Below are positions 12,967 to 20,200 of a stretch of 64,000 bases of DNA, piece by piece; position 1 is the stretch's first letter, and each line of letters begins with the position of its first letter. The notes beneath the pieces were generated by a model. The model ran no database searches. It was given only the letters and a program-made list of their open reading frames with translations, and was not told where the DNA came from. Source of the stretch: Oikopleura dioica (Eukaryota; Animalia; Chordata); assembly GCA_907165135.1 (NCBI GenBank), contig OU015568.1, positions 15,573,208 to 15,637,207 on the forward strand, read 5' to 3'. The position numbers and the translations under genes are program-made.

Positions 12967-14796
12967 ATGGAATTCAAGCTTGTTTTTGAGTCCAAAAAAT
13001 TCATTCAAAAAATGACACAAACATCAAAAAAGAGATCATCCGACGAAGGAGAAGATGGTGATTATCGCTCCCTAAAGTACTTTGGGAATATTCCAGAGGA
13101 AAAAAGATACGATTATGTTTCTCTGTCCCTCGAAACTGCTGATACTTTTGGGTGAGTTCTACTTGGCTAAGATCGAAACTGAACTTTGTTTAGCCAGGAA
13201 AAGGTGCTTGTAAGAGCGACTGTAGTCAACGCGCATGGCCGGACAGTTCTCGGTAAGGTTGCAGACGCGAATTTCTAGTGACTCTTTTGCTTAGACGAAT
13301 TTTGCATGCCGCAGTCGAAATACATCATTGACATGCGAACATGGCACCATGGAATCAAAGTCGAAGAGATCCAAGACGAGCAGTGGGAAGAAGAACTCAT
13401 CGACAAGGTTCGCGAGCTGCTGCGCAACAAAATCGTCGTCGGCTTCAACCTTGAGCCGTATTTGAAAGTGCTCGGAGTTACGTACGCCGCTGGAAAGATT
13501 ATTGGGTGATCCACATTTGCTTATTTGATGGACATTTTTCGAGCATTCGCATGAGGATGAAAGTGAATGTGGATTAGATGCAAATGTGGATCACCTTTTA
13601 GTTGCGCGATATTTCCAGAAAGTATACCTTTACTTTGGGATTGGAGGCTCCCACTTTGACTGATCTGGCTGATGAGCATTTAGGAAACAGAATCAAATAT
13701 TTTTTTTAATTTCGAATTGGAAAATTGCGTTTATGAAATGACCGTAAAAATCTACCCGTTTTTGATCCTGTAAGATATGGACTATCCAGCTGAAGATCAC
13801 CATGATTCAATTGAAGAAGCCCGGACTGTCATGAAAATTTTCGTAAGTTCTTTCTTTTTATTTTGAAAAATAAAACTTTTTTTTATCAAGGCAAAGGACT
13901 TTGATAAGTGGGAGAATTCGAAAGAAACGTTGGAAGAAGAGGAAGCTAAGCGAAAGAAAAACTTCAGCCAGGAAGTGAAGAAAGAAGCGTACTACTATTG
14001 CAAGTACTGCGATGTGGCCATGAACTCGCGAGACCAGGAAGACGCGCATCTCGATGGAAAGAAGCACCGAAAGAAACGAAAGCAGTACAACAAGTTGCAC
14101 GGAATCAAGGATTACTCGCCTCCACCAAGACGAAAGAAGGTTACCCCGCCGAGATACGACTCCCGAAGCCGTTCTCGAAGCCGATCGTACTCGTCTTCTA
14201 GCTCTCGATCTCGATCACGAGGTCGAACACGCGGACGCTATCGAAGTCGCTCGCGATCTTACTCCAGCAGCCGATCTCGAAGCTCCTCGCGTGGCCGATC
14301 CAAAGACCGAGTCTATGAAGAGTACAGAAAGGAAAGAAAAGAAGTGGCGAAAGACACCGGCAAACCCCAATACAACAAGTTCGGCGAGCGGATCAACACA
14401 CGGGGATCATCGCCAGCGCCTTCGATGATCGAGAACATGGGCGGCGCAACACCAGCCGTTCATCGATCCCGAACGCCGAAACGATCTCGCTCGCGATCGC
14501 GAACTCCAAGGCGAAAGACACCGCCCCGGAAAGAAAAATCGCGCAGAAAGAGGCGGTACGTCAGCTCTTCTTCGAGTGAAAGCGAAGAATCAGAAAGCTC
14601 GGAAGAATCGATGGCCAGCGATGATTCCATGGACACGATTTATAATAGAAAGCGCTACTCAAAGAAGAAGAAAGCGAAAGCGAAGAAACAGGAAGAAAGT
14701 TCGGAAGAGTCGTTTGCTAGCGATGATTCCAACGATACGATTTATAATAGAAAGCGGTATGCGAAGAAGAAGAAGTCGAAGAAATCCAGGAGATGA
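12967..14796 (+). CDS. Degenerate DEDDh exonuclease (REX4/ISG20/AEN family) fused to a matrin-type C2H2 zinc finger, RS domain and Lys-rich tail; 7 exons
   Basis: Exons 12967-13151, 13194-13252, 13295-13505, 13544-13562, 13602-13683, 13775-13842, 13891-14796 join in frame. Exo motifs YVSLSLET, VRATVVNAHGRTVLDEF, IVVGFNLEPYLKVL, HHDSIEEARTVMKIF; zinc finger YYCKYCDVAMNSRDQEDAHLDGKKH; SRSRSRS tracts. Confidence 0.85.
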
Positions 14797-17288: not shown

Positions 17289-20200
17289 TTAACTAAGGCC
17301 GAAGAGCACAGAAAAATCGTCGGAGAAGGGCGAGTTTTGGAAAAGAGACGATTCCAAATCCGAGCTTGGAACTTCTGAACTCGAGAAGAAATCGGATGCA
17401 CTGTTTTGTGATGAGTTAAGTTGGCTCGAAAGTTGATTATTTTGATTTTGACTATTATGGTTGTTGTGATGATTTTGATTTGGTTGGGAGTTGTTTAGGG
17501 AGTTGGCATGACTGTGGTGGTTGTTGGTCTGATGCTGTGAGAGATTGTGATTGTTTGTTTGTTGTTGTTGAAGATGGAGAGGAGGTTGGCTGTTGTTAGA
17601 AATGATCGTGTCATTGTGGAGCATGCTGTGCCACGGCGACGAGTTCTGCTCGACGGAGGACTCCATAGATACCACCGGCCGGGAGTTCATATCGCGGCTT
17701 AAACACGGTTTAGGACGGAGATAATAAAAACCCTCGTGTAAACGAGCAAATATCGAAACTGCGTTTTGATAAAATTAGAAGTTGATGATTACCTATTGCA
17801 TGTGACCGGGCTCCGTCTGCTGAGCAACTGATTGATCGGATCAAGCGTGTTCTGTTCCTGGATAATCCCTATTCGTCCGGCTCGGGTCAAATTGTAATCT
17901 TTTGATTTAAAAACTTTACGTTCCTCTTTATCTATTATTTCTTTCCTCGGGGCGATCAGAGAGATGAGAGAATATCGCTAAATTTAAGCCTCCTGAAATG
18001 GGAAGAAATTAAGGGTATACGCCCCGATCGAGCGGGTTTATGGAAAATGGCCTTTCCGGAAGAACAGTGGGTAATCCTTTCCTGAGGTTGAGGAGGCTCG
18101 TACCAGGAGCCGTTTGAAACCATCGTGTCTACTTGCGACAGCTGATCAAGCTCGAAGCTCTGCGACTTGAGCGGGCTTAGCTCAGAGCCAATGCCGGAAT
18201 TGGAGCGGTGGCTCGGTGTTGTTTCAGAGCCAGATCCGGAATAGGCAGAATCGGACGCCGGCGAGCCGGAGGCAGACCACAGGGGAGATACCGGCTGATA
18301 GACGTAGACACTGAAAATACGAACGTCAGATAAATGTCAAGAAAGCCGCCAGATGCGGTAGCTACGATTGATTAAAGCAGAAATTAGAAATTAGATCAAT
18401 TAGAAAGTTGTCTGTTTAATTTTTCTCAACTCTCGGAGAAATTAATCCGCCCTAGAAAATCCCTTTAGAATTGGCATTTGGAGAGAGCGTTCTCTTCGTT
18501 CACCCCAGGTGGCAGAAGACTGCAAAAGGTGATCCCGCGTTCAACCCCGAGCTCATCGCCTGCTATTTCTAGCCACGTTTTCTAATCCCTTTTACGGCTC
18601 GGCAACGGCTCCGAGCTTCTAATGCATTGCTTTCATATGTTTATCCGTCTTTTAGAGGTGTCTTACGTGGTTGAAAAGTTCACTCTACCGGTCGGCAATT
18701 ATTTTTTATTCAATCAGCCAAAATTGTTTCCAAAATTTAACCTCTAAAAAGATATCGGGAAGAAACTTTAATTGCCGTCAAAATATGAGTGTAATTAAAG
18801 AAAAAGTCCCTGTAGATTGTTTGACTCAAAACAGCTCTACACCTTTGTGATTGCAAAAATGACTAGAATTCCCAAAAGAAAGAGGCGTTTTTAGATTGAG
18901 TATGTACAAACTATTGGGAGCTGGGCTCGGCAACCTGTGTAGAAAACCTGAGTCAGGGTCATACAGAAGAGAAATGAAAAGCCGCGCAGCGGCTTTTTTA
19001 AAAGACGAAGCCGCGAAGACTTTTAAGGTTAACGAAGTTTTCCAGCACACTTCCGGCTTATAAACCCCAGAACACCATACCTTTTCAGAATCAACAGAGA
19101 ATTTCAAGAATTTTGACCCTTTAAAATTCTAGAAATCTCCACTTCCGGTCGATTCTAGAGCCGGAAGTTGACGAAATTTGGGAGTATGGGCAACTTGTGG
19201 CTTATCAAATTGATTCTCAGAAGATTCCCTATCAACTTAGAGAAGAATCAATCCCGGTCACGGTGAAATCAAACGCTTAAAACTGAAAAAAAAATTCATA
19301 AATCAATGCATATTTTCGTAGTTTTGGCGGTCGGTTTGACCGCGGTTGGATTTGTTTCTTTGAATGAATCGATAATGAGATGACTCAGAATCTTCTGAGC
19401 ATCAATTTGATGGGTCACACTTTATACATATTCGAAAATTTCGTCAACTTCCGGCTCTAGAATCGACCGGAAGTGGAGATTTCTAGAATTTTAAAGGGTC
19501 AAAATTCTTGAAATTTTCTGCTGATTCTGAAAAGGTATGGTGTTCTGGGGTTTATAAGCCGGAAGTGGGCTGGAAAACTTCGTTAACCTTAAAAAAAGCA
19601 CGTCGAAGCGGCTTCGCCAGAATTTCTGATAGTTTGTAATGGAAATATTAGCAAAGCCGCTTCGCGGCTTCGTTTTTAAAAAAGCCGCTGCGCGGCTTTT
19701 CATTTCTCTTCTTTATGACCCTGACTCAGGTTTTCTACACAGGTTGCCGAGCCCAGATTGGGAGAAAAGTTGAGATTGAGCTGGAATTGATGAAGCTCTC
19801 TAAGCTTGTTGACTCAAAATATACGAAGCTGACACGTCTACACGGTTTTTTCTAGCTCCCATCATTTGATTTTATTAAAATTCACTTTGTTTTTACCTTT
19901 CACTGCTCGTCGAAGGGGAGGAGGCGTGCTCGGGCGTTCCCACATCTGACCCGTCAAACCTAAAACCCGTTAGTCCGTGTGTTCTAGAGCAAATCCCCTT
20001 TTCGAGGGATTTGAGGGACTCGATTTCGAGAGTTTGAGGAGTCTCGTGGTACTTGTTGAAGTTGGTGTTGTTGTTCTGATTGTTGTGGCCGGCGGAGATC
20101 TGAGGCTGATTGTCGGGCTCTTGTTTGACCTGCTGGTTGTTCGGAGTTGCTGTTTTGTGCGCTTGGATCTGCGCGCCCTGCGCTTGGAGCTTGTCCAGGT

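Follow-up and report, generated by a model that had tools for sequence, protein, structure and literature searches.

REXO4/Rex4 and ISG20L2 are enzymes of nucleolar pre-rRNA processing which, together with ISG20, represent the DEDDh exonucleases of the RNase_T type (PF00929). The exonuclease fold also occurs without its catalytic residues, as in Exuperantia and Egalitarian of Drosophila, where it serves as a nucleic-acid-binding module. A further pseudo-exonuclease module that binds nucleic acids and has lost its catalytic residues is the PXL domain of PML-1 (PMC13659232). In ISG20 itself the exchange D94G, which affects the ExoII aspartate, abolishes the exonuclease activity, although the mutant protein is still able to bind a stem-loop RNA, for which it competes with another protein (PMC5388505). 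Here we describe a gene of Oikopleura dioica that appears to have taken a comparable route. It is located on a stretch of 64,000 nt (the window; positions 15,573,208 to 15,637,207 of contig OU015568.1, assembly GCA_907165135.1) in the pseudo-autosomal region of the Okinawa assembly OKI2018_I69, and corresponds to Oidioi.mRNA.OKI2018_I69.PAR.g12856.t1 (474 aa, unnamed; hereafter PAR.g12856), its last exon being 100% identical to the public protein. The multi-exon gene on the + strand, which ends with the stop codon TGA at 14794-14796, probably encodes a lineage-restricted pseudo-exonuclease, that is, a diverged copy that has kept the fold and binds RNA rather than cutting it; we assign this reading a probability of about 0.6. 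In Norwegian O. dioica, the orthologous locus (L001, FN655447.1) agrees with it in the arrangement of the exons and in the presence of the GA-AG intron.

Structure prediction and HMMER searches agree with the REX4/ISG20-type fold that had been proposed for the N-terminal part in an earlier reading of the bare sequence (the original prediction). The AlphaFold2 model of the nuclease-like domain (mean pLDDT 82.6) was matched by Foldseek to ISG20L2 (7yw5; E 3e-11, TM 0.83, rmsd 2.2 A) and to ISG20 (1wlj; E 1e-9, TM 0.75), SDN1 (5z9x) being found as well, and a structure search of the ESM Atlas gave a TM of 0.80 to RNase_T clusters. At the sequence level, a phmmer search against PDB detected ISG20L2 (E 4.5e-4), ISG20 (E 1e-3) and SDN1 (E 1.2e-3). 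An exhaustive phmmer search yielded 627 relatives at E<=1e-3. The best 150 of them resemble REXO4 proteins in length and in the range matched; those that were looked up are named RNA exonuclease 4 and derive from fungi, algae and animals, and the best sequence relatives are Rex4-like (P0011; 39% identity, E 2.5e-13). When the nuclease part was used in a word-indexed protein search, nothing was retrieved except the protein itself and the orthologue from Norway, and Pfam detected nothing in the single nuclease exons, which are too short as pieces.

The alignment reveals that the catalytic residues of the domain have been lost largely in the same manner in both lineages. In ExoI the D-C-E of active relatives is replaced by S-L-E in Okinawa and by A-L-E in Norway, the Okinawan serine (13126-13128) standing in place of the aspartate and the glutamate (13132-13134) being retained. 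The ExoII motif G-H-x-x-x-x-D reads G-F-N-L-E-P-Y in Okinawa and G-H-N-L-E-P-Y in Norway, a tyrosine (13459-13461) replacing the catalytic aspartate at the position equivalent to D94 of ISG20. ExoIII has the form H-x4-E instead of H-x4-D in both, with the histidine retained (13801-13803) and a glutamate (13816-13818) replacing the aspartate. The motif losses in the original prediction were therefore read correctly, and two of the four metal-binding carboxylates are missing in Okinawa as well as in Norway. Since the catalytic D-x-E/D/H-x4-D pattern is not found, the domain is to be regarded as a homologue and not as a functional member of the DEDDh exonucleases.

Okinawan and Norwegian exonuclease domains share 79% of their amino acids (pN 0.13, pS 0.71), and synonymous sites are saturated between the two loci (pS 0.71-0.79). 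The domain is under strong purifying selection; it is a constrained non-catalytic module and not a decaying one.

Both parts of the proposed protein are carried by one RNA. The transcript contig L004 (1575 nt, from a JGI sample) is colinear with the Norwegian exons, and in the alignment it lacks introns 1, 2 and 5 and the GA-AG intron and is therefore derived from spliced RNA. The GA-AG junction (E-H-L|D-M-D-Y) and the junction between exonuclease and finger (K-I-F|A-K-D) are both confirmed in this sister-lineage transcript, which extends from the nuclease-like part into the RS part. In the paralogue described below, an intron occupies the site of the latter junction in the same phase, and the residues downstream of this junction can be aligned with the W-E helix located behind ExoIII in REXO4 proteins. 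The assignment of both halves to a single gene is thereby supported, and the GA-AG intron, which Norwegian O. dioica has in the corresponding position, is confirmed. A terminal hairpin on this intron was considered and rejected, since its closing stem of about 10 bp (13687-13697/13761-13771) folds no better than shuffled sequences in Okinawa (z 0.66) and is absent in Norway.

The genome of O. dioica also encodes an intact relative. The protein chr2.g4262 (CAG5109770.1, 240 aa) consists of an exonuclease with the motifs D-C-E, G-H-S-L-D-A-D and H-D-S-K-E-D and one finger of the same type as in PAR.g12856, and it has no RS tail. Its gene shares introns 1, 2 and 5 with PAR.g12856 in position and phase and has no intron at the sites of the GA-AG intron and of a hairpin element treated below. 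Two identical marine-metagenome contigs (L002 and L003) likewise encode an intact exonuclease with a finger. The identity of these relatives to PAR.g12856 ranges from 39 to 44%. Phylogenetic analysis of 145 REXO4-like domains (quick search, LG+G4; midpoint root for drawing only) grouped the catalytically dead Okinawa-Norway pair with L002 and chr2.g4262 in a single clade, which has an SH-aLRT support of 98. Based on this clade and on the shared introns we infer that PAR.g12856 originated by duplication.

According to the original prediction, the architecture had no described counterpart. This does not hold for the combination of exonuclease and finger, which is already present in chr2.g4262 and in L002 and L003, and ESM Atlas clusters from plants and Ascomycota, viewed as cluster summaries only, join RNase_T with zf-met or zf-C2H2_jaz; this layout therefore predates PAR.g12856. 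Among the best 150 of the 627 phmmer hits, a C-x2-C...H-x-H finger after the domain was detected only in O. dioica proteins. The supposed lineage specificity thus applies to one part of the architecture: the dead site with the RS tail appears to be restricted to the O. dioica species complex as far as it was sampled, while the exonuclease with a finger is more widespread. The special trait of PAR.g12856 is that it combines lost catalysis with an RS tail. No paper linking Oikopleura with REXO4-type exonucleases was found in the literature searched.

Three observations concern the relatives themselves. The gene chr2.g4262 (L006 1501-2337; OU015567.1, chr2) lies wholly inside the span of a chitin synthase gene (1422 aa) called on the opposite strand, in a nested or antisense arrangement. 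In L002 (1840-1850), and identically in L003, an in-frame TAA separates the exonuclease helix from the exon of the finger in two independent samples; it could mean that a short intron was overlooked, that the gene became a pseudogene recently or that a variant genetic code is used. Furthermore, the top hits of the exhaustive search were proteins of the spittlebug Clastoptera arizonana (P0004 and P0010; UniRef A0A1B6DAF0 and A0A1B6E1S5) and Logan contigs (P0006 and P0009). The spittlebug-type proteins comprise 730-800 aa with a signal-peptide-like N-terminus and four tandem ISG20-like domains with mostly degenerate catalytic motifs, and they look like an independent, apparently secreted family of pseudo-exonuclease repeats.

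The finger of PAR.g12856 scores 23.9 bits with zf-C2H2_jaz and 23.3 bits with zf-met, above the respective Pfam cut-offs of 22.6 and 21.2, and with 18.1 bits it remains below the zf-U1 cut-off of 22. Its best solved relative in PDB is the double-stranded RNA (dsRNA)-binding ZFa (E 0.001), followed by U1C (E 0.04), ZNF346, ZMAT2 and ZMAT5, and it is conserved with 86% amino-acid identity between Okinawa and Norway. The term matrin/U1C-type finger in the original prediction is correct with respect to the JAZ/matrin class and less so with respect to U1C. As judged from these matches, matrin/U1-type is a fair class name, the duplex-binding JAZ/ZFa type being the closest.

A true RS domain, as originally proposed, is present: in Okinawa a stretch of 60 residues contains 24 RS/SR dipeptides, and in Norway 30 were counted. 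The tail continues with a second basic patch of Arg, Ser, Pro and Lys, an acidic Ser/Glu patch and a Lys-rich end, whose motif T-I-Y-x-R-K-R-Y-x-K-K-K-K is duplicated in Okinawa; the Norwegian protein ends with one related copy (TIYTRKRYAKKKK). Classical SR factors are defined by one or two N-terminal RNA recognition motifs (RRMs) and a C-terminal RS domain. Since the RS domain is present and no RRM was found by Pfam, the protein is at most SR-related.

Based on these features the following scenario is proposed. An appendicularian DEDDh exonuclease of the REXO4 type would first have gained a C-terminal C2H2 finger of the dsRNA type, a state kept in chr2.g4262. After the duplication, the copy that became PAR.g12856 would have lost the aspartates of ExoI and ExoII, exchanged that of ExoIII for glutamate and gained a tail of about 240 residues rich in RS, acidic Ser and Lys. 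The dead cleft and the duplex-binding finger may then hold structured RNA or RNA 3' ends without cutting them, and the RS/Lys tail may place the protein in a nuclear RNA-processing compartment (nucleolus or speckles), where it could shield substrates, compete for them or deliver them, possibly those of the active paralogue. For the protein to be made, a conserved hairpin-shaped non-GT intron would have to be excised from its own pre-mRNA. A nucleolar role appears at least as likely as a role in splicing, because the parent family acts on pre-rRNA in the nucleolus.

A role as splicing factor was nevertheless the function originally envisaged. The finger would contact a splice-site or snRNA duplex in the manner of U1C, the RS domain would attract spliceosomal SR proteins, and the non-GT introns of this genome (GA-AG, GG-AG) would be helped by the protein. 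In favour of this, the finger belongs to the U1-like class with U1C, ZMAT2 and ZMAT5 among its weak PDB matches, and the RS domain is a true one. Furthermore, the gene seems to be restricted to a lineage in whose Okinawan genome the median intron measures 49 bp and 11% of the introns are non-GT/AG (PMC8008620), GA-AG introns being abundant in the species (PMC7072748), and it has itself two non-GT introns, one of them the putative one that forms a strong conserved hairpin. However, the finger stays below the zf-U1 cut-off and has its best match in the dsRNA-binding ZFa, an RRM is missing, the parent family (REXO4/Rex4, ISG20L2) is active in nucleolar pre-rRNA processing, and RS-like and Lys-rich tails occur in nucleolar proteins, too. 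In addition, a study of 2026 on non-canonical splicing in tunicates credits U2AF paralogues and snRNA m6A and names no exonuclease (PMC13326754). Taking these points together, we consider a splicing factor unlikely. The original functional view is plausible in outline as far as a non-catalytic RNA binder is concerned, while its splicing specifics are unsupported.

The reading frame of the protein is interrupted at one site between ExoII and ExoIII by the hairpin element mentioned above. If the canonical-looking GT at 13506 is taken as the donor, exon 3 ends in phase 2, while exon 4, which starts after the AG at 13600-13601, begins in phase 0. In the original prediction, which counted seven exons, this was bridged by a microexon of 19 nt (13544-13562) between GT-AG mini-introns of 38 and 39 nt. 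The microexon joins in frame in the window only: its Norwegian equivalent has 20 nt and leads to a frameshift with 12 stops, so that it was rejected as the conserved solution. The GT-AG intron of the public Okinawan model (13482-13618) was also rejected, since its donor is CT in Norway and since it drops 13 residues, among them the R-D-x-S/T strand, which is conserved in the whole family. In the Norwegian annotation the locus is represented by two genes (136 aa and 344 aa; L001 240-733 and 803-1940) split exactly at the element. Both public annotations are wrong at this site, the Okinawan one by dropping residues and the Norwegian one by splitting one gene. The sole reading that remains in frame in Okinawa and Norway is a single non-GT intron of the GG-AG type in phase 0/0, or likewise TG-AG three bases later.

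The element forms one long hairpin with perfect arms of 15 bp (13506-13520/13580-13594) and a folding energy of -45.5 kcal/mol (z -7.1), which none of 200 shuffled sequences reached. Its counterparts are located at 728-838 of L001 and 396-506 of L004. The identity of the element between Okinawa and Norway amounts to 76% counting indel columns, compared with 44-55%, the level of shuffled sequences, in the other four introns, and it is better conserved between these cryptic species than the third positions of the flanking codons. Transposon copies were rejected as its source because the arms occur within the 64-kb window only at the two ends of the element, and a known RNA family because Rfam, including its microRNA models, gave no match at E<=10. 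Translation through the element was rejected as well: read-through of the TGA at 13507-13509 would meet several further in-frame stops, and for ribosomal bypassing no matching take-off and landing codons were seen when the sequence was read, while a conserved pyrimidine-AG acceptor is present.

Presumably the element has to be removed to make the protein, most simply as a single GG-AG intron. We infer this because exon 4 is conserved (21 of its 27 residues are common to Norway, 11 of those codons being synonymously different) without an in-frame start upstream, because the pyrimidine-AG acceptor and the phase are conserved, because two homologues read through the site without an intron, and because a break would cut the fold between ExoII and ExoIII. 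Its retention in the only transcript found (L004) suggests regulated or inefficient splicing, and the element may be a regulated or detained intron. Its conservation together with this retention points to a control of the gene at the level of splicing.

Alternatively, the element might never be spliced. The locus would then be an artefact of gene modelling or a decaying gene yielding an N-terminal fragment of about 130 residues or two products as annotated in Norway, and a protein with exonuclease and RS parts would not exist. This would fit the Norwegian gene split, the stop codon within the element as retained in L004 and a conserved ATG (M-D-Y-P) downstream. However, exon 4, which lies between the element and this ATG, is conserved as described in spite of lacking an in-frame start upstream, the fold would be halved, homologues are continuous through the site, and the acceptor and the phase 0/0 are conserved. 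Considering furthermore that both halves are under purifying selection and that one RNA spans them, this explanation seems quite improbable.

Several points weigh against the interpretation of PAR.g12856 as a pseudo-exonuclease. The only transcript keeps the hairpin element, with TGA directly after G-K-L-T-G. Four RNA runs with the species label contained no reads at 90% likeness; they probably derive from another cryptic lineage and thus provide no test. The expression and the junctions in Okinawa as well as the production of the full-length protein are predictions, and so are the localisation, the RNA binding and the partners of the presumed non-catalytic nuclear RNA-binding adaptor. With the annotated, internally shortened protein, Pfam RNase_T scored only 14.2 bits against a cut-off of 24. 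Finally, ExoI retains its glutamate and ExoIII its histidine and, at the last position, an acidic residue, a pattern that might allow a weak or altered activity. That the protein is still an enzyme, whose remodelled active site would use the Glu, His and Glu that survive and perhaps also an Asp close by, that of E-T-A-D, is nevertheless very improbable, for although these residues are conserved in both lineages and the domain is under strong purifying selection, the latter is equally expected for a binding module, half of the metal-binding carboxylates are gone in both lineages, and the single ExoII substitution is sufficient to inactivate ISG20 (PMC5388505). Very improbable, too, is the idea of a dedicated trans-acting factor for the hairpin-closed non-GT introns of O. 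dioica: its duplex-binding finger and dead cleft would recognise the terminal stem that draws the two splice sites together, its RS domain would substitute for the recognition of GT by U1 in recruiting the spliceosome, and it would regulate itself via the strongly conserved hairpin intron of its own pre-mRNA.

Given the pseudo-exonuclease interpretation, the locus represents a clean natural case of a pseudoenzyme: a finger-bearing RNA exonuclease was duplicated, and one copy lost catalysis, gained an RS tail and stayed constrained. The presence of the intact and the dead paralogue in one small genome provides a pair for asking what a nuclease fold does that no longer cuts. Moreover, both annotation errors arise at a hairpin-shaped putative non-GT intron. 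If, hypothetically, the protein acts on such introns, this would bear on the tolerance of about 11% non-canonical introns.

The features of the gene are compiled in the following table. The original prediction placed the start codon at 12967, but the Norwegian counterpart of this ATG is directly followed by a stop, and the start that is conserved with Norway, and also used in the public Okinawan model, is that at 13012. The upstream ATG, found only in Okinawa, directly follows T-T-C-T-A-G and would add 15 codons in frame; the context T-C-T-A-G|A-T-G could be a trans-splice acceptor. Downstream of PAR.g12856, an open reading frame rich in Gln, Asn and His was detected on the - strand (17289-17690). 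The downstream neighbour in Norway, likewise on the strand opposite to the gene, is a bZIP gene, of which this reading frame may be the orthologue.

Table. Features of PAR.g12856 (positions within the window).
Feature	Position	Strand	Remarks
Exon 1	13012-13151	+	Conserved ATG at 13012; NIPEE-R-DY motif; degenerate ExoI S-L-S-L-E
Intron 1	13152-13193	+	GT-AG, 42 nt; gone in L004; paralogue has an intron at the same site
Exon 2	13194-13252	+	Beta strands after ExoI
Intron 2	13253-13294	+	GT-AG, 42 nt, phase 1; paralogue intron in same position and phase
Exon 3	13295-13503	+	Degenerate ExoII VGFNLEPY; 3' end uncertain by a few bases
Hairpin element, putative GG-AG intron	13504-13601	+	Phase 0/0; in-frame stops
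Exon 4	13602-13683	+	RD-x-S/T strand, then helix
GA-AG intron	13684-13774	+	91 nt; GA-AG in Norway too; removed in L004
Exon 5	13775-13842	+	ExoIII as H-D-S-I-E-E
Intron 5	13843-13890	+	GT-AG, 48 nt, phase 0; exonuclease-finger junction; paralogue intron in same position and phase
Exon 6	13891-14796	+	End of ExoIII helix, charged linker, finger, RS domain, acidic Ser/Glu patch, Lys-rich tail, stop
C2H2 zinc finger	13993-14070	+	C-x2-C-x12-H-x5-H, JAZ/matrin/U1-like class
RS domain	14122-14301	+	24 RS/SR dipeptides per 60 residues
C-terminal motif, two copies	14623-14673 and 14725-14775	+	D-S-x-D-T-I-Y-N-R-K-R-Y-x-K-K-K-K

In comparison with the known pseudo-exonucleases, PAR.g12856 is of independent origin. 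PXL, Exuperantia and Egalitarian are associated with other partner domains (RBCC, SAM-like, dynein adaptor), and none of them is known to possess a U1-like finger or an RS domain. With ZFa, ZNF346/JAZ, U1C, ZMAT2, ZMAT5 and LUC7L the protein shares the C-x2-C-x12-H-x5-H finger and its H-x-x-G-K-K-H signature, and in LUC7L such a finger is likewise paired with an RS-rich tail. In contrast to the U1-like, matrin and JAZ proteins, PAR.g12856 has a single finger which is located after a nuclease fold and scores below the zf-U1 cut-off.

In the plant and fungal clusters of the ESM Atlas, which are designated 'RNA exonuclease 4' or 'C2H2-type domain-containing protein', PF00929 occurs together with zf-met or zf-C2H2_jaz as is the case here; compared by their summaries only, the clusters differ in that no RS tail is reported, and none of them is among the best 150 sequence hits. 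In chr2.g4262 and L002/L003, the exonuclease is followed by one JAZ/matrin-type finger as in PAR.g12856. Their DEDDh residues are intact, however, reading D-C-E, G-H-S-L-x-x-D and H-D-S-K-E-D, and the proteins end shortly after the finger, without the RS tail; the putative hairpin intron and the GA-AG intron are absent from their genes.

With REXO4/Rex4, ISG20L2 and ISG20, finally, PAR.g12856 has the fold in common, and likewise the T-x-x-x-G-I motif, the R-D-T strand and the W-E helix located behind ExoIII. It differs from REXO4 and ISG20L2 in lacking their basic N-terminal nucleolar region, and from all of these enzymes in that the catalytic D-E-D-H-D has become S-E-Y-H-E and that a finger and an RS tail have been added at the C-terminus.

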